Source of the DNA: Amoeboradix gromovi X-113
Lineage: Eukaryota; Fungi; Sanchytriomycota
DNA: 8,129 bases
Reading direction: 5' to 3'
Assembly: GCA_018985225.1 (NCBI GenBank)
Contig: JADGIF010000464.1
Span: forward strand, 1-8,129
Within the stretch, counting starts at the first letter, position 1; every line of letters begins with the position of its first letter. Both the position numbers and the translations under genes were made by a program. A model generated the notes under the pieces. The model searched no databases and was not told the DNA's origin. It saw only the letters and a program-made list of their open reading frames with translations. Below, one piece after another: positions 143 to 8,044 of the stretch.

Positions 143-272
143 AAAGTCAATAGTTACCGTACAAATCTAAAATAAAGGCTAGATGAAAGAGCAAAAGAAT
201 AGCTATACAGAATATTTATTTTTGAAATTTGGATACAAATTGTCTAGTCTAGTTTTTACAGAGCATGCACCC
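1..272 (-). mobile_element. Probable third, degenerate or longer family B copy running off the window start
   Basis: 186-222 (AAAGAGCAAAAGAATAGCTATACAGAATATTTATTTT) closely matches 3811-3847 inside family B copy 1. 245-258 (TAGTCTAGTTTTTA) matches the TIR core. Confidence 0.5.
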
Positions 273-415: not shown

Positions 416-935
416 CGTTAAAAGTCCTGATTTCCGAGAAAATCGAGAATTTCCACAGAGAAATTTGCAGCGCTAGTGATTCCGTTGTAGTGATTCCTCA
501 CGCTTTCACCACCTTGAGGAGGGATTGAATTAGTATGTATATACTTGCTGTATATATTCCTTGTTGCCATATGATCTCTATTGTTGCACACGTGGTAAGA
601 CCAATGACACAAGAATTATTAAATAAACGGTTTACAAGTTTATTTGTCGTTGATCTCTTTCCTGGCGTTCAGAGACATCTAATTGTTCCATGTTTGGACC
701 AGTTCCTTAACGTTGATGTATACTATAACTGTTACTTATTCTTCAGATCTGACATGTTCAGGGTTACATCTATTGATTAAATTTACCTTTAGTCAAAACG
801 GAGAATATTTAGTATTTGAGGTATTTGAGAAATCTAGAAAAGTCATGCAATTATATGTAAATATATACAGATTCTCGATAATTGATTTATTTTACAAAAT
901 TTAATAGCTGTCTGTCTACCATATTAGAAAATGAA
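416..935 (-). repeat. Family A copy 1: degenerate repeat with RuvC-III-like motif NRDHMATRNI (553-582)
   Basis: Aligns directly with 2944-3425, with near-identical blocks GTCCTGATTTCCGAGAAAATCGAGAATTTCCACAGAGAAA and CAAGAATTATTAAATAAACGGTTTACAA...GTTGATCTCTTTCCTGGCGTTCAGAGACATCTAATT. The right boundary is approximate. Confidence 0.8.
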
Positions 936-2943: not shown

Positions 2944-3396
2944 CGTTAAGTCCTGATTTCCGAGAAAATCGAGAATTTCCACAGAGAAACTAGCAATGCT
3001 AGATGCTACATTACAGCGATTGCTCACGCTTTCACTACCCTGAGGCGGGATTGAATAATGATGCAGATACTTGATGTATATATGTTCCTTGCTGCCATAT
3101 GGTCTCTACTATCGCATATTCAGTTAGACCAATTACAAGAATTATTAAATAAACGGTTTACAATTTTATTTATCGTTGATCTCTTTCCTGGCGTTCAGAG
3201 ACATCTAATTCTTCCATGCTTGGACCAGTTCCTCAGTGTTGATGAATTTATGCTGTATCTGTTAGTTATTTCTTTAGAATTGATTTACCACTTGTGAAAA
3301 GGAAGAATATCAAGCATTTAACCTATTAGAAGAGTCTTGAAGTTATACAAAAATGCATACAAATTCGCAATAAATGATTTATTCAAGAAAACAATC
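2944..3396 (-). repeat. Family A copy 2: degenerate repeat with SRDHMAARNI motif (3081-3110)
   Basis: Direct repeat of 416-905 with the same left breakpoint (CGTTAA..GTCCTGA). The minus frame reads ..VNRLFNNSCNWSN*ICDSRDHMAARNIYTSSICIIIQSRLRVVKA* (stop at 3024-3026). Confidence 0.8.
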
Positions 3397-3512
3397 GAGC
3401 TGCTTTTCTAGCAAATCAAGAATTTTGACTGAGCAACTAAAAAAGATAGTCGATTCATTAAAGTGGCTACTCATGCTTTTAACAGCTTGAAGCGGGATTG
3501 AACAACGATATA

Positions 3513-3727
3513 TGGGACACAAAATATAAAAACTAGACTAACTCGTCTTTAAAGGTGCTCCATACGGAGGAAATGCTATCATTAATAAAAGATCTTCTAT
3601 TATACCAATTTTCTTTCATTACTTTCAATCCCCTTTTCAAAATAAAAGTAGAAGACCCTGCATCTCGTTGAAATATATGAGGTCTTTGGGCCTCTAAGCA
3701 AAAGGTGCATTTTCTTAGACGGTACTC
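3513..3727 (-). ncRNA. Candidate omegaRNA scaffold overlapping the end of the Fanzor-like frame (copy 1)
   Basis: This segment is retained in both B copies and ends at the element right end. It has conserved stems TCTAAG..CTTAGA, AAGACC..GGTCTT and CTCC-GTAT-GGAG. The call is inferred by analogy with TnpB/Fanzor loci. Confidence 0.4.
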
Positions 3728-3895
3728 TTTTCTAGAGTCATTTTGTAATGTTATACTAACATCATTACTCTTGTCAATTTCTTTGAAGTGTAATAGTGAT
3801 ATTTTATTTGAAAGAGTAAGAGAATAGCTGTACAGAATATTTATTTTCCTTTTATACTCGTCAACTCCGCAACTAGCTGAATGTCCACTCGCCTC
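3533..3895 (-). pseudogene. ATG-less open frame (121 codons incl. stop) resembling the TnpB/Fanzor Zn-ribbon + RuvC-III C-terminus
   Basis: Manual translation: ...GVDEYK...EYRLRKCTFCLEAQRPHIFQRDAGSSTFILKRGLKVMKENWYNRRSFINDSISSVWSTFKDELV*. CxxC is followed 10 residues later by RD and then a hydrophobic helix. The TAG stop (3533-3535) lies inside the TIR. The canonical xNAAxNI asparagines are absent. Confidence 0.6.
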
Positions 3896-4877
3896 TTAAA
3901 TAATGTTCCAAGTTGTTACACAAAGTTGGTCCAGTTTTTATATTTGATGTCCCATTTGTAATAAATATTATATGTTCCGTGCTCCCATATGGCCTCTATC
4001 CACTTGTAAATGATCACTTCTATTGTCTTTAATATTTAAGGTGCTTGGGAAACCTATTTTTGCTCATTGATGAGACTCCAGCAAAAACAGTCTCTTTTGA
4101 CGAGGATGTGAAAACACTCAAAGATTATCAAATGTCTTGTAATTGCAGAAGAATCTTTTATTGGTGTTGAGAGATATCAAATAAGCCTTGATGAAGTATA
4201 TGTTCTGTATTTAGTAGTTTCTTTAGACTTGACGTGCCGACGAAACTATTTAAATGCAGTTGGAAAAGTCTAGAAAGAGAGCAAACTGGAGAGATATAGC
4301 TGATCTAATTGCTTAAAATGGCTTGCTCAATTTGGGACCGAGAGATGCCAGTGGTAGAAGTTTCAAGAATGTTTAAGCTACAAGTCGGGAGGACTCCTAG
4401 GAGAATGTGCAATAGCAAGCCCGTTGAGGCTGTTTGATGCCTTCTTGGTTTTTCATGTGTATTCATAAATATATTTAAATTTTTTAGTATTGACAACAGC
4501 GAAGTCCCATAAGACTGTTAGTGATGACACCTGAATTTGCTGATCAACTTCATACTAAGTGCTGCAAGATGTTAACATATTTTGTTCAACCGTCTCACAG
4601 TCCTTCTCTTCTTATCATTGAAATATAAATTGCGAGCAACTTTCTTTCCTACCTATAATTCATCGATGGTGATAATGAAGATAAAAATGCCGCAAAGTGT
4701 ATAATGACTGGACTCCCAAGCTTGATATTTTTGCTATTCTTGTTATCTAAGTGAATATAATCACAAACAGGACTCAATTTACTCTAAAACACATACAGGG
4801 AGTGTCTCCTGGCCGCAGTTGGCCATTACATAAAAATTGGAAGTTATTGGTACTTTATTTCTCCTTGTTTCTTTCGT

Positions 4878-6209
4878 ATGACTTCGTCTTTGTATTCATT
4901 TGCACGGACTGAAATCGTAAATAAACATCAGAAACAAATTGGAGATTACCTGCTGTTAAAAACAATAGGTAGTGGATCAATGGGCAAGGTCAAATTAGGA
5001 ATACATTATGCCAACAAATGCCAGGTAGCAATAAAGTTACTGCCTAGAAAACAGGATGCGCGATGTATTCGTGAGATAGCAGTTATGAAATATTGCAGTC
5101 ACCCTAATATACTGAAGCTTCACTGTGCCTATGTTTCTCCAAATTGGTGGTATTTAATAACAGACTATATAGATGGTGTTCAGGTGTTGGATTGGGTTAT
5201 TGCGAACCAAAAAATACCGGAGGATAAAGCTAGGGATGTAATAAGAATGTTAGCTAGTGCTTTGGGATACCTACATCGCCATTGCATTAGTCACCGAGAC
5301 TTGAAAATCGAAAATTTATTGATTGATCGACAGGGTCAGCTTAAGTTAATTGACTTTGGATTGTCTAACTTCTACAGTGACAAACTACTGGATACTTTTT
5401 GCGGGTCTCTATATTTTGCAGCTCCTGAACTTTTAAAGGCCAACCCTTATAATCCACTTATCGCCGATTGCTGGTCATTTGGCATTATTATTTATGTTAT
5501 TTGCAGCGGAAAGGTTCCATTTGATGATCATAATCTAGCAAAGCTTCATGCCAAAATAAAGTCTGGAGATTTAAAATATCCTGAACATTTCAGCACATCG
5601 CTAGTTAATTTACTTTCAAGGATTATTGTAGTTGATCCTAACATGAGAGTAGATATTGAATGGATCAGAATGTCTAGATGGTTGAATATTAATTATACCA
5701 GTTTTGTAGATTGCCGGGTACCTTATCATCGTGGTGACATCAAGCCAACCCATGTTGACATCTTGAAAGAGATAGGTTTTCACGACATACATTCTTCGGC
5801 TGCTATTCAAATGCATCACTTAATAGATGAGTACACACCAGTGAACCTTGAATCTGTTATTGAGGAGCCAAGCAACAATTTCTTCTCTTTCGTCAAATGT
5901 GCTATAATAACAAGGTGCTCTATTGAATCTTTAACAGATAAGATCATTAAAATGTGCCATGCACATCAATACCTGCTGCAAAAAGAAACAGCACTATCAT
6001 TGAAAATTAGCTCAGAAACTGCAATGTCAGTGGAGGTAACACAACAAAGCTCTGTGCCCAGTATATATAGTGACTTTGGAGCAGAGGTTGTGTTGCAGAT
6101 AGAGATATTAAAGATGTGGAAATGGTATGGTCTGAAATGTACTCGATTAGCTGGAGATATGTATAGTTATAAAAATTTAATTCGGTTGATTAAAAATTCC
6201 TTGATTTAA
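4878..6209 (+). CDS. KIN1: Kin1/Kin2 (PAR-1/MARK) family Ser/Thr kinase with C-terminal KA1 domain
   Basis: 443-aa ORF with GSGSMGKVK, VAIK, HRDLKIEN and DFG. TFCGSLYFAAPELL and GKVPFDD..LHAKIK are characteristic of fungal Kin1/Kin2. The C-terminal LQIEILK..GLKCTRLAGDMYSYKNL is KA1-like. Confidence 0.9.
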   Translation: MTSSLYSFARTEIVNKHQKQIGDYLLLKTIGSGSMGKVKLGIHYANKCQVAIKLLPRKQDARCIREIAVMKYCSHPNILKLHCAYVSPNWWYLITDYIDGVQVLDWVIANQKIPEDKARDVIRMLASALGYLHRHCISHRDLKIENLLIDRQGQLKLIDFGLSNFYSDKLLDTFCGSLYFAAPELLKANPYNPLIADCWSFGIIIYVICSGKVPFDDHNLAKLHAKIKSGDLKYPEHFSTSLVNLLSRIIVVDPNMRVDIEWIRMSRWLNINYTSFVDCRVPYHRGDIKPTHVDILKEIGFHDIHSSAAIQMHHLIDEYTPVNLESVIEEPSNNFFSFVKCAIITRCSIESLTDKIIKMCHAHQYLLQKETALSLKISSETAMSVEVTQQSSVPSIYSDFGAEVVLQIEILKMWKWYGLKCTRLAGDMYSYKNLIRLIKNSLI

Positions 6210-6215
6210 AATGTG

Positions 6216-6221
6216 AATAAA
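6216..6221 (+). terminator. Putative polyadenylation signal of KIN1
   Basis: AATAAA 6 nt after the stop. Confidence 0.5.
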
Positions 6222-6471
6222 ATACTGTTTATTTTAATTTGCCTTCAATATCATGCTCTTAACAAGTGGGACATCAAATAGAAAAACTGGACCAACTTTC
6301 TGAAAAAGTTGGAATCATTATTTCTATTGTATTAACCGATAATAAATTAAAATAAATTAATCTGTTCAAGTAGCTTATTTTAGTATAAAAGCTTTTCATC
6401 CATCAAAATCTTAGAAACAATGATTGCAAGAAGAAGAGAAAACAAAACATAAGTTATATGAAAGGTGGTAG

Positions 6472-6696
6472 AAAGAAAAAGAAAAAGGAACAGATAATGA
6501 GTACCGTCTAAGAGAATGCACCTTTTGCTTAGACAATCAAAGACCTTCACTATTTGAAAGAGAGAGCGGGTCATCTAGTTTTGTTTTAAAGAGGGGAATG
6601 TCATTAATGAAAGAAAATTGGTTTGAAAGAAGGACTCTTATTAATAATAGTATTTCCTCCTTATGGAGCATCTACTTTAAAAACGACTTGGTCTAG
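6472..6696 (+). pseudogene. Open frame (75 codons, 5'-truncated) homologous to the 3533-3727 fragment; RD changed to RE
   Basis: Translation: EYRLRECTFCLDNQRPSLFERESGSSSFVLKRGMSLMKENWFERRTLINNSISSLWSIYFKNDLV*. By hand, 42 of 65 columns are identical to copy 1, with mostly conservative changes and one 3-nt indel. Confidence 0.6.
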
Positions 6697-6716
6697 TTTT
6701 TATATTTGGTGTCCCA
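6499..6716 (+). ncRNA. Candidate omegaRNA scaffold (copy 2)
   Basis: Stems GTCTAAG..CTTAGAC, GACC..GGTC and CTCC-TTAT-GGAG sit at positions equivalent to copy 1. Conservation stops at GTCCCA. Confidence 0.4.
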
Positions 6717-6751
6717 ATTACTCTCAAATTGACGAGGACCCCTTGTAACGC

Positions 6752-8044
6752 ATGTCTTTCAAAGGATTGACCAAGGCGATAAACAGATTACCACAGCATT
6801 TAAAAGAAAAGACTAGCAGCGGTAGTGACATTACTAGTGACAGCGATTTTGCACTAGTCTTGAACTCATTTAGAGTGTTCTCCACTAGCATTGACAAAGT
6901 CTTTTTAAGTGGATCAAAGTATGCAAAACAGCTAGATGTAATGCTGAAAGAGCTTCAAAACTACTGTGAAAATATTGAGGATATATTGAGAGGGGATCTA
7001 GCTGGTAAAAAAGTGTCTTCCTCTGCTGATAACATCGTAACGCCAGTCGAAGTCACTTCTGTTAAAACTTGTATTGAAGGTGTTTCTGCACAATTAAGAC
7101 CATATATCGATCAGTTATTGGCCACAGTAAATAAGTTAGAACTGGTAAACAAGGCAAATCAAGGAATTGAAAAAACCATTATCAAAAGAGAACACAAAAG
7201 AGTGGATTATGATAGATATAAAGCCGATTTAGCGGAAATGGAAAAGAAGAGAGCCAATACTAATGTTGTTTTCAGTGTTAAAGACGAGAAGAAATTACAG
7301 GATATCAGCGCCAAATATAGCCAAGCGGATTATGAGTACAATACAATCCATAGTGAACTGAAACAGCAAATTCCAATGATTATTTCACTTAAACCTTCAC
7401 TAGTAGAGCCGATATTGTTTAAAATGTTTGAAATCCAATCAATATTTTATTCCTCACTTAGCCAGACTCTGCCACAGTCACTTGTTAACCAAACGTTGGA
7501 TGCTTTATATACGGACATGTCGACAGCGGATACAAAAATAAGAGCACTGGAATCCATTGCAGGTCCAAACGCAAATAGTAAACAAAGCCTAGATAGAAGG
7601 ACTTCTAAAGACAAAACTATACCTCCAGCTGTAAGTCAAGAAAGTGTGAATAGAGATCCACCAAATAAGATCAGACCTAACCCCTCTATGCCTACACCAG
7701 TTCATAACCCATTTGAAGAACCTAAAAATACTTTGCCACTGTACACCGCTATTCCAGCTGCTGCTCCAGTTAATTCTAATCCCTGGGTAAACCAACCTCC
7801 CCTACAAACTAGTAACTACTCAAGCTCTCAGCCTGGCATACCGCCAAAGCCTAAAGTTCAAATCAAACAAGTCACAGCCACGGCTCTGTTTGACTTTTCA
7901 GGACAGGAGAGTGGTGATTTGTCGTTCAAACAGGGTGATACGATTATCATATTGGAGAAGACGAATACTACGGAAGATTGGTGGAAAGGCATGTTAAACG
8001 ATAAACAAGGCATGTTTCCCGCTAATTATGTAAGGTTGAACTGA
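6752..8044 (+). CDS. RVS167: Rvs167/amphiphysin-like N-BAR + Pro-rich linker + SH3 endocytic protein
   Basis: 430-aa ORF. It has an N-terminal amphipathic MSFKGLTKAINRLPQ, the BAR motif KREHKRVDYDRY and a Pro-rich linker with NPF. The C-terminal SH3 reads ALFDFSGQESGDLSF...DWWKG...GMFPANYV. Confidence 0.9.
   Translation: MSFKGLTKAINRLPQHLKEKTSSGSDITSDSDFALVLNSFRVFSTSIDKVFLSGSKYAKQLDVMLKELQNYCENIEDILRGDLAGKKVSSSADNIVTPVEVTSVKTCIEGVSAQLRPYIDQLLATVNKLELVNKANQGIEKTIIKREHKRVDYDRYKADLAEMEKKRANTNVVFSVKDEKKLQDISAKYSQADYEYNTIHSELKQQIPMIISLKPSLVEPILFKMFEIQSIFYSSLSQTLPQSLVNQTLDALYTDMSTADTKIRALESIAGPNANSKQSLDRRTSKDKTIPPAVSQESVNRDPPNKIRPNPSMPTPVHNPFEEPKNTLPLYTAIPAAAPVNSNPWVNQPPLQTSNYSSSQPGIPPKPKVQIKQVTATALFDFSGQESGDLSFKQGDTIIILEKTNTTEDWWKGMLNDKQGMFPANYVRLN

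Follow-up and report, generated by a model that had tools for sequence, protein, structure and literature searches.

To our knowledge, Fanzor1 ghost loci, that is, copies of an element that keep its ends and lack its open reading frame (ORF), have so far been characterised in one chytrid only. The closest described element, Spu-1 of Spizellomyces punctatus (Bao and Jurka 2013; Saito et al. 2023), is ~2.1 kb long, with a single ORF between inverted repeats of 30–33 nt and CA upstream of the left repeat; its 134 ghost loci supply working omegaRNAs, and its target-adjacent motif (TAM) is CATA (PMC10432273, PMC3627910). Here, we describe two mini-elements, A and B, in an 8,129-nucleotide stretch of DNA from the fungus Amoeboradix gromovi X-113 (contig JADGIF010000464.1, here C729; we call the whole stretch the window), which belongs to an assembly of 10,549,678 bases in 1,319 contigs. 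A and B are very probably non-autonomous, internally deleted ghost copies of a Spu-1-type, Fanzor1-like transposon with terminal inverted repeats (TIRs), for which we propose mobilisation in trans and a role as omegaRNA template. Their derivation from a Fanzor-encoding TIR element is close to certain, and guide-RNA production by the ghost copies is suggested by analogy. According to the searched text of the genome paper, the published A. gromovi genome came from amplified single sporangia, and that text makes no mention of transposable elements, repeats or RNA data (PMC8371127). A literature search found no publication naming both Fanzor and Amoeboradix.

A preliminary description of this DNA had likened the two elements to the Spu-1 ghost loci, and the comparison proved apt (PMC10432273, PMC3627910). 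As reconstructed, the A/B family falls in the same ~2.1-kb class, with a single TnpB-like ORF of ~600–630 residues between TIRs of 30–33 nt and no internal transposase, and it shares with Spu-1 a short conserved motif immediately before the left repeat, many ORF-less copies that keep the ends, and the glycine and glutamate pair (G...E) of Fanzor1. Unlike Spu-1, the A/B family has its stop codon inside the right TIR and a 4-bp target-site duplication (TSD) of the form AWWT, whereas that of Spu-1 is putatively TA. The ghosts number ~800 in 10.5 Mb here, compared with 134 in 24 Mb, a search of this assembly gave no intact A/B nuclease gene, and the family, known here from sequence alone, has no sequence-level match to SpuFz1. 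The A/B family belongs to a kind of element already known, and its density is unusual.

The two inverted TIR elements of ~445 bp first described were found in place, in opposite orientations, in intergenic DNA between the window genes. Their parts, and a third relic of the family, are as follows.

3513–3954 (442 bp), ORF on the minus strand: element A including the outer T/A, an A-type ghost
3514–3953, minus strand: A proper, GGGACA...TGTCCC, as used for the flank comparison
3514–3543: right TIR of A (ORF orientation)
3924–3953: left TIR of A (ORF orientation)
3536–3781, minus strand: coding remnant of A, the last 82 codons of the Fanzor ORF, with the stop at 3533–3535 inside the TIR
6267–6716 (450 bp), ORF on the plus strand: element B including the outer T/A, a B-type ghost
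6268–6715, plus strand: B proper, GGGACA...TGTCCC, as used for the flank comparison
6268–6297: left TIR of B
6686–6715: right TIR of B
6487–6693, plus strand: coding remnant of B, the last 69 codons, with the stop at 6694–6696 inside the TIR
170–222, minus strand: third family relic, 53 nt, 89% identical to positions 131–183 of a 1,662-bp copy described below

The TIRs of each element are ~30 nt long and 88–90% complementary. A and B have in common their first ~57–69 nt and their last ~220 nt (81% identity), and their middles are unlike. As had been proposed, the frame of the tail is preserved: in both elements it is a single open frame encoding CTFC (the second CxxC), 10 residues and a pair that is RD for A and RE for B, within the peptide ...YRLR(K/E)CTFCL-x7-FxR(D/E)xGSSxF(I/V)LKRG...LV, of which 42/66 aligned residues are identical. 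The frame closes with TAG 20 nt from the element end, within the TIR, in A as in B. The remnant in A comprises the zinc-ribbon linker, the second CxxC, RD and the C-terminal tail, and has no start codon.

Longer copies reveal what this peptide is. The ghost peptides alone (66–119 residues) gave no match in Pfam. Searching 1.84 billion proteins with a profile built from 20 in-frame copies (A2) returned P0007, a 616-residue protein matched at its extreme C-terminus, together with short ORFs belonging to the family; P0007 comes from an 11-kb metagenomic contig of 27% GC with closely spaced genes. P0007 was then used as a query on the A. gromovi genome itself, which yielded longer relics. On contig C1157 (locus L076), a 436-residue frame is open to the contig edge and ends in the same right TIR, with a tail 74% identical to that of A. 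On contig C33 (14729–16390, locus L081), a 1,662-bp copy has both TIRs; its left 169 nt and right 240 nt (277 alignment columns) match A at 82–83% identity, and the interior between these arms holds N-terminal and RuvC remnants of the nuclease. Element A corresponds to ~146–169 nt from the left and ~272 nt from the right of this copy. A is thus such a copy with its interior deleted and its two arms brought together, which agrees with the initial proposal that the mini-elements are internally deleted. A 5'-truncated copy in a metagenome (ENA ERZ28573549, L106:200–1169) is 73–77% identical and its right TIR is nearly invariant, so the family exists outside this assembly; this copy adjoins a fragment of an ABC-transporter gene.

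TnpB and Fanzor proteins are defined by the motif D-X(125,275)-[TS][TS]-X-X-[C4 zinc finger]-X(5,50)-RD (Bao and Jurka, PMC3627910). The long sequences carry GIDPGVK (RuvC-I), YRQW(K/R)FRKYG, (I/L)FWGDG, NE-x-x-TSK-x-CSVC (the alternative RuvC-II glutamate, TS and the first CxxC) and, at the C-terminus, CTFC (the second CxxC) and x10-RD (RuvC-III). D-x(171–220)-TS-xx-CxxC-x(18–28)-CxxC-x(5–10)-RD is present in L076, P0007, P0010, L078 and L079, which fall within the superfamily definition. A hallmark of Fanzor1 is an alternative RuvC-II glutamate before TS, with a glycine ~36 residues upstream (G500/E536 in SPu-1-1p; PMC3627910), the ‘alternative glutamate’ of Jiang et al. (PMC10530073). All six long sequences have a pair of this type, WG[DN]G followed after 34–38 residues by E-x-x-TS-x-x-C, a spacing like the ~36 of Spu-1. 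The carriage is likewise that of Fanzor1, in a transposon with 30-nt TIRs and a 4-bp TSD, and not of the IS607 type, which has neither. PF07282 (Cas12f1-like TNB / OrfB zinc ribbon) is matched by 7/7 aligned family members, with L078 (33.2 bits) and L079 (35.9 bits) exceeding the cut-off of 26.3 bits, and L081 (24.3 bits, E 3.6e-5) falling slightly short of it, as does L076 (20.9 bits, E 4e-4). The Fanzor/TnpB-like C-terminus first read from the tail is thereby borne out, as longer copies with the same TIRs hold RuvC-I, the alternative glutamate with TS, both CxxC pairs and RD.

Other searches place the family among more distant relatives. The family profile matched the RuvC/TNB region of Cas12m in the PDB (E 0.0025), phmmer searches of the PDB with P0007 and the C1157 frame gave no match, and two k-mer-limited protein searches found only 2–3 relatives. 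An hhalign comparison with a Fanzor2-like ORF of the same genome lined up the right motifs, at a probability as low as 5.8%. The ESM Atlas neighbours of P0007 and the C1157 frame are clusters carrying PF26935 (DUF8286) and PF07282, annotated mostly as Nucleocytoviricota, and the Atlas model of P0007 compares with bacterial IS605 OrfB/TnpB clusters at template modelling (TM) scores of 0.42–0.44 by query and 0.56–0.64 by row. The nearest intact relatives, P0007 (616 residues, 38% identical to the C1157 frame) and P0010, have the same motifs and, by language-model features as well as structure, group with the giant-virus (Nucleocytoviricota) ‘transposase’ clusters; the flanks of the P0007 gene are no more similar to the A/B TIRs than shuffled sequences are. 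The TnpB–omegaRNA systems of IS200/IS605 resemble the A/B family in their RuvC domain with a C4 TNB ribbon, in an ORF whose 3' end overlaps the right end of the element, and in a conserved left-flank motif, as a TAM would be. Unlike them, the A/B elements are of a eukaryotic cut-and-paste type with TIRs and a TSD, not of the HUH peel-and-paste type, and have the alternative RuvC-II glutamate.

A full-length parent had been predicted elsewhere in the genome, and this was upheld in part: there are copies of 1.66 kb and of 1.3 kb or more, but no intact full-length gene turned up, and the best family frames are of 436 (running into the contig edge), 291 and 273 residues. Two intact ORFs, of 693 residues (C363, L078:1463–3541, minus strand) and 748 residues (L079:746–2989; C1184:3545–5788), have the canonical DRDVN and the D...TS-C4...RD motif, and are 28–33% identical to the A/B family over the C-terminal ~170 residues. 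No TIRs are evident around either. Both belong to a related but distinct Fanzor-like family, which may still be active. The 273-residue frame (L077:742–1560, C574) comes from an internally deleted remnant of a Fanzor gene like that of P0007 (53% identity); it has no similarity to the A/B TIRs and stands for a third lineage of Fanzor1-like genes in this genome. For PF07282, 560 candidate sites were counted genome-wide, and none of the sampled sites lies within family-A tails.

We next consider how the copies were inserted, for which the flanks of 54 copies (33 A-type and 21 B-type; loci L001–L060 and L082–L101) were compared. The flanks in the window are the following.

3510–3513: ATAT, on the ORF-downstream side of A, pairing with ATTT at 3954–3957 (3/4 match)
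3954–3957: ATTT, on the ORF-upstream side of A, next to GTA at 3958–3960
6264–6267: AAGT, left of B, pairing with AATT at 6716–6719 (3/4 match)
6716–6719: AATT, right of B

Across the 54 copies, the outer T/A is far more variable than GGGACA/TGTCCC and co-varies with the opposite flank. In 13/54 copies the two 4-nt flanks are identical, where 3.3 such copies are expected by permutation, and rare variants (ATAG, ATAA, ATTA, AAAC and ACTC) are matched on both sides. The TSD is 4 bp, with consensus AWWT, and the ATAT/ATTT flanks of A are a decayed duplication. A 2-bp, Tc1-like TSD was dropped, the duplication being 4 bp once the outer T/A is counted as flank. The TIRs initially given as TGGGAC...GTCCCA are therefore real, with boundaries one base off on each side, as the outer T/A belongs to the TSD.

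Outside the TSD, the ORF-upstream flank reads (T/A)AC, with C in 49/54 copies and A in 43/54, as against 26/54 at the mirrored right positions (P 2e-6 and 1e-3). The motif is present at both window elements: GTA at 3958–3960 is TAC on the ORF strand of A, and AAC (6261–6263) precedes AAGT left of B. The base before the conserved AC is T in 23/33 A-type and A in 17/21 B-type copies. This asymmetry is unlike a symmetric transposase target and is what a nuclease's TAM requirement would give. Spu-1 likewise has its CA on this side, and the left-flank (T/A)AC looks TAM-like.

The enzyme that moved the copies bears on a different origin for them, as miniature inverted-repeat transposable elements (MITEs) of a DDE transposon, such as Tc1/mariner, with the peptide as the C-terminal zinc finger of the transposase. 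TIRs, a short TSD and high copy number are what such MITEs have, and the genome does contain four DDE_3 (Tc1/IS630-type) loci (L102–L105), with open frames of 208–407 residues and extra ORFs in common. None of the four has a matching TIR: at L103 (1091–4001, C99), the only locus whose ends could be defined, the 24-bp TIRs are perfect and bear no relation to those of the Fanzor family, and the DDE_3 loci were dropped as mobilisers on this ground. The TSD is moreover 4 bp, not TA, and the longer copies that share these TIRs code for RuvC-I, the TS motif, the C4 ribbon and RD and for no DDE domain. A DDE transposase ending in a zinc finger, which the preliminary description had named as the case against itself, is excluded by the Fanzor interior of these copies, and we consider a DDE origin of the MITEs extremely improbable. 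A search for PF01359 gave no match, but as it gave none in the control genomes either, it is uninformative.

The 4-bp, AT-rich AWWT duplication is a feature of the Sola2 type. In dictyostelids, the Sola2–Fanzor1 elements DFa-1/2/3 and PPa-1/4/5 have AT-rich 4-bp TSDs (AWWT, ATAT, AAAT and ATTT), and the transposase is deleted in some (PMC3627910). They resemble the A/B family as Fanzor1-carrying TIR elements with an AT-rich 4-bp TSD; unlike it, they have TIRs of 12–21 bp and, in some copies, a Sola2 transposase. No Sola-type transposase with the A/B TIRs was identified in A. gromovi, no search aimed at Sola having been made.

Recurrence of the element is far beyond chance. A 19-nt TIR pattern, allowing up to 2 mismatches, occurs at 782 + 814 = 1,596 sites in the whole genome, and its reversed control at none; because both TIRs of a copy match the pattern, this amounts to ~800 copies, or roughly 0.37 Mb and ~3.5% of the assembly. 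A search with A scored 40 full-length copies of 1,347 candidates, and one with B another 40 of 1,189, at 80–87% identity, which places B in an older subfamily of its own with at least 40 copies. The 66-residue peptide gave 150 scored matches of 996 candidates, all with E < 5e-29. Many copies are located at contig ends, and the family breaks the short-read assembly, which is relevant for annotators of this genome.

The coding remnant drifts neutrally and is not a gene. Per-site diversity in 46 A-type tails is 0.090, 0.068 and 0.088 at codon positions 1, 2 and 3, and frameshifts or truncations affect ~40% of A-type and most B-type copies; these figures, the missing start codon and the change of RD to RE in B all argue that it is not a gene. 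It is open in many copies only owing to their youth. A real small protein-coding gene, or alternatively the solo long terminal repeats (LTRs) of a Ty-like retrotransposon, might be suspected from a frame open in most copies and from dispersed units of ~450 bp with TG...CA ends. For the gene, the equal codon-position diversity, the frequent frameshifts and the missing start codon speak otherwise. For solo LTRs, no direct-repeat pairs surround a gag-pol region, the ends are 30-nt TIRs with a 4-bp TSD, and the TIR-bounded long copies with a Fanzor ORF inside refute the idea. We accord the pair of them next to no weight.

Deletion breakpoints vary among the A, B1 and B2 types. The retained right arm measures 190–270 nt, and the left arm of B types ~69 nt. 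A B-type subgroup (L084, L093, L094 and L096–L101) has another breakpoint, at columns 30–47 of alignment A4. The best-conserved internal hairpin, GUCUAAGAAAA...UUUUGCUUAGAC, spans the CTFC codons.

The right end was also examined as RNA. The only recurrent fold is a terminal two-stem hairpin, which is a candidate piece of an omegaRNA scaffold.

3513–3565, minus strand: terminal two-stem hairpin of A, GGAGCAC/GGUGUCC enclosing AAAAAC/GUUUUU
6664–6716, plus strand: terminal two-stem hairpin of B

It is paired in 97.5% of cells, and A, B, L081 and L004 each have it as their minimum-energy fold. As the stop lies inside the TIR, a scaffold of ~75 nt would overlap ~18 codons. In the two longest open relatives, third codon positions 90–210 nt from the end are conserved at 30/40, versus 134/236, for an interval chosen post hoc (P 0.036). 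Rfam gave no match over the whole window. Taken together, folding and conservation would fit a constraint on the right end at the level of RNA or DNA, and fall short of proof that guides are made.

Several results weigh against reading A and B as ghost copies of a Fanzor1-like element that serve as omegaRNA templates. On the protein side, the family profile had no sequence match in the PDB to the solved Fanzor1 (SpuFz1), and an AlphaFold model from the 7-sequence alignment reached a predicted local distance difference test (pLDDT) score of 37.7, so the assignment to the Fanzor1 clade is based on motifs and architecture and not on phylogeny. The search with P0007 as query found no intact full-length gene of the A/B family in the assembly, and B has lost the catalytic RD to RE. 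On the RNA side, shuffled sequences fold as well as the 230-nt tails of the two elements (z of 0.10 for A and 0.57 for B), and RNAalifold on 58 tails gave a weak consensus of −4.06 kcal/mol, with a covariation term of −0.04, limited to the terminal hairpin. Covariation in that hairpin is borderline (24–39/500 shuffles reach the observed values), and it is not the minimum-energy fold in L076. In the B-type subgroup, the best-conserved internal hairpin has lost its 5' arm at the breakpoint, and copies of this kind are still many. Finally, MITEs in general keep subterminal sequence for transposase binding.

This last point leads to the reading that the copies are dead MITEs and nothing more, their ORF tail kept as cis-acting subterminal DNA for the transposase and RNA function never having attached to the ghosts, to which we give an even chance. 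Retention of both ends and not of the right end alone, breakpoints that differ among the A, B1 and B2 types, neutral drift of the remnants, whole-tail folding at z ~0 and borderline covariation all fit it. It explains less well why the right arm (190–270 nt) is consistently longer than the B-type left arm (~69 nt), the asymmetric flank motif is hard to assign to a symmetric transposase target, and the Spu-1 precedent argues for functional ghost omegaRNAs.

That precedent is also the starting point for the reverse proposal, a live guide repertoire in which the ~800 ghosts are transcribed to omegaRNAs that programme an active Fanzor, its host copy missed by the fragmented assembly or its gene borne by a giant virus. 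The ghost omegaRNAs of Spu-1 work with SpuFz1 (PMC10432273); in the A/B family, the right TIR is nearly invariant even in the 73–77% identical metagenomic relative, the left-flank motif is strongly asymmetric, third codon positions 90–210 nt from the end are slightly over-conserved (the post hoc P of 0.036), and the C1157 frame stays open until the contig ends. The assembly yielded no intact cognate gene, though, and the remnants decay neutrally and carry frameshifts, with folding and covariation signal absent beyond the short terminal hairpin. We regard a live repertoire as doubtful, and a working nuclease–guide system in the genome today as similarly unlikely; that copies still give omegaRNA-like transcripts is, by analogy with Spu-1, a somewhat better prospect, but still less likely than not. 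A standing genome-wide guide library, read by an active Fanzor of the host or one delivered by a giant virus, with (T/A)AC as the TAM, seems to us very unlikely.

For the internally deleted ghost copies of a Fanzor1-like transposon that we favour, the history is in part shown by the copies and in part proposed. By analogy, the parent would have been ~2.1 kb, with one Fanzor1-like ORF of the TnpB family between TIRs of ~30 bp and its stop inside the right TIR. Deletions have left only the last 60–82 codons, and the copies inserted with a 4-bp AWWT duplication, next to (T/A)AC on the ORF-upstream side. Movement would depend on a putative transposase of the 4-bp-TSD type, supplied in trans and possibly Sola2-like. 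The retained right end may be an omegaRNA template, with a scaffold ending at the TIR and a guide taken from the flank as in Spu-1 and TnpB, where a Spu-1-type RNA would reach ~11–21 nt beyond the right end, and the left-flank (T/A)AC may be the nuclease's TAM.

The window has a GC content of 35%, and its genes are compact and intron-poor, at a yeast-like density. Those adjoining the elements are as follows.

1227–2927: FAN1-like VRR-NUC gene
4878–6209: protein kinase gene
6752–8044: BAR-SH3 gene, with its ATG at 6752

The end of B is 36 bp 5' of the BAR-SH3 ATG (6716–6752), and its right flank, the candidate guide source, lies in the 5' region of that gene. If made, the guide of B would be read from AATT into 6720 onward, 33 nt 5' of the ATG at 6752, as we infer from Spu-1 (PMC10432273). 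The relic at 170–222 sits upstream of the FAN1-like gene. A second repeat family has three copies in the window (422–924, 2948–3395 and 3395–4310), two of them in tandem, and element A is nested inside the third. On its minus strand, this repeat encodes a RuvC-III-like NRDHMATRNIY, which matches the C-terminus of a 569-residue TnpB/Fanzor2-like ORF (C542, L070:1420–3126, minus strand; BLASTP E 3e-4).

The A/B family thus gives a second early-diverging fungal lineage with the Spu-1 architecture, at ~6 times the copy number in a genome less than half as large. The 54 flanks offer a concrete TAM prediction and a hint as to the mobilising transposase. If the ghosts were a standing guide library, the mini-elements of the host and a nuclease carried by a virus would be the two parts of a single, split RNA-guided system, serving homing or host–virus conflict.

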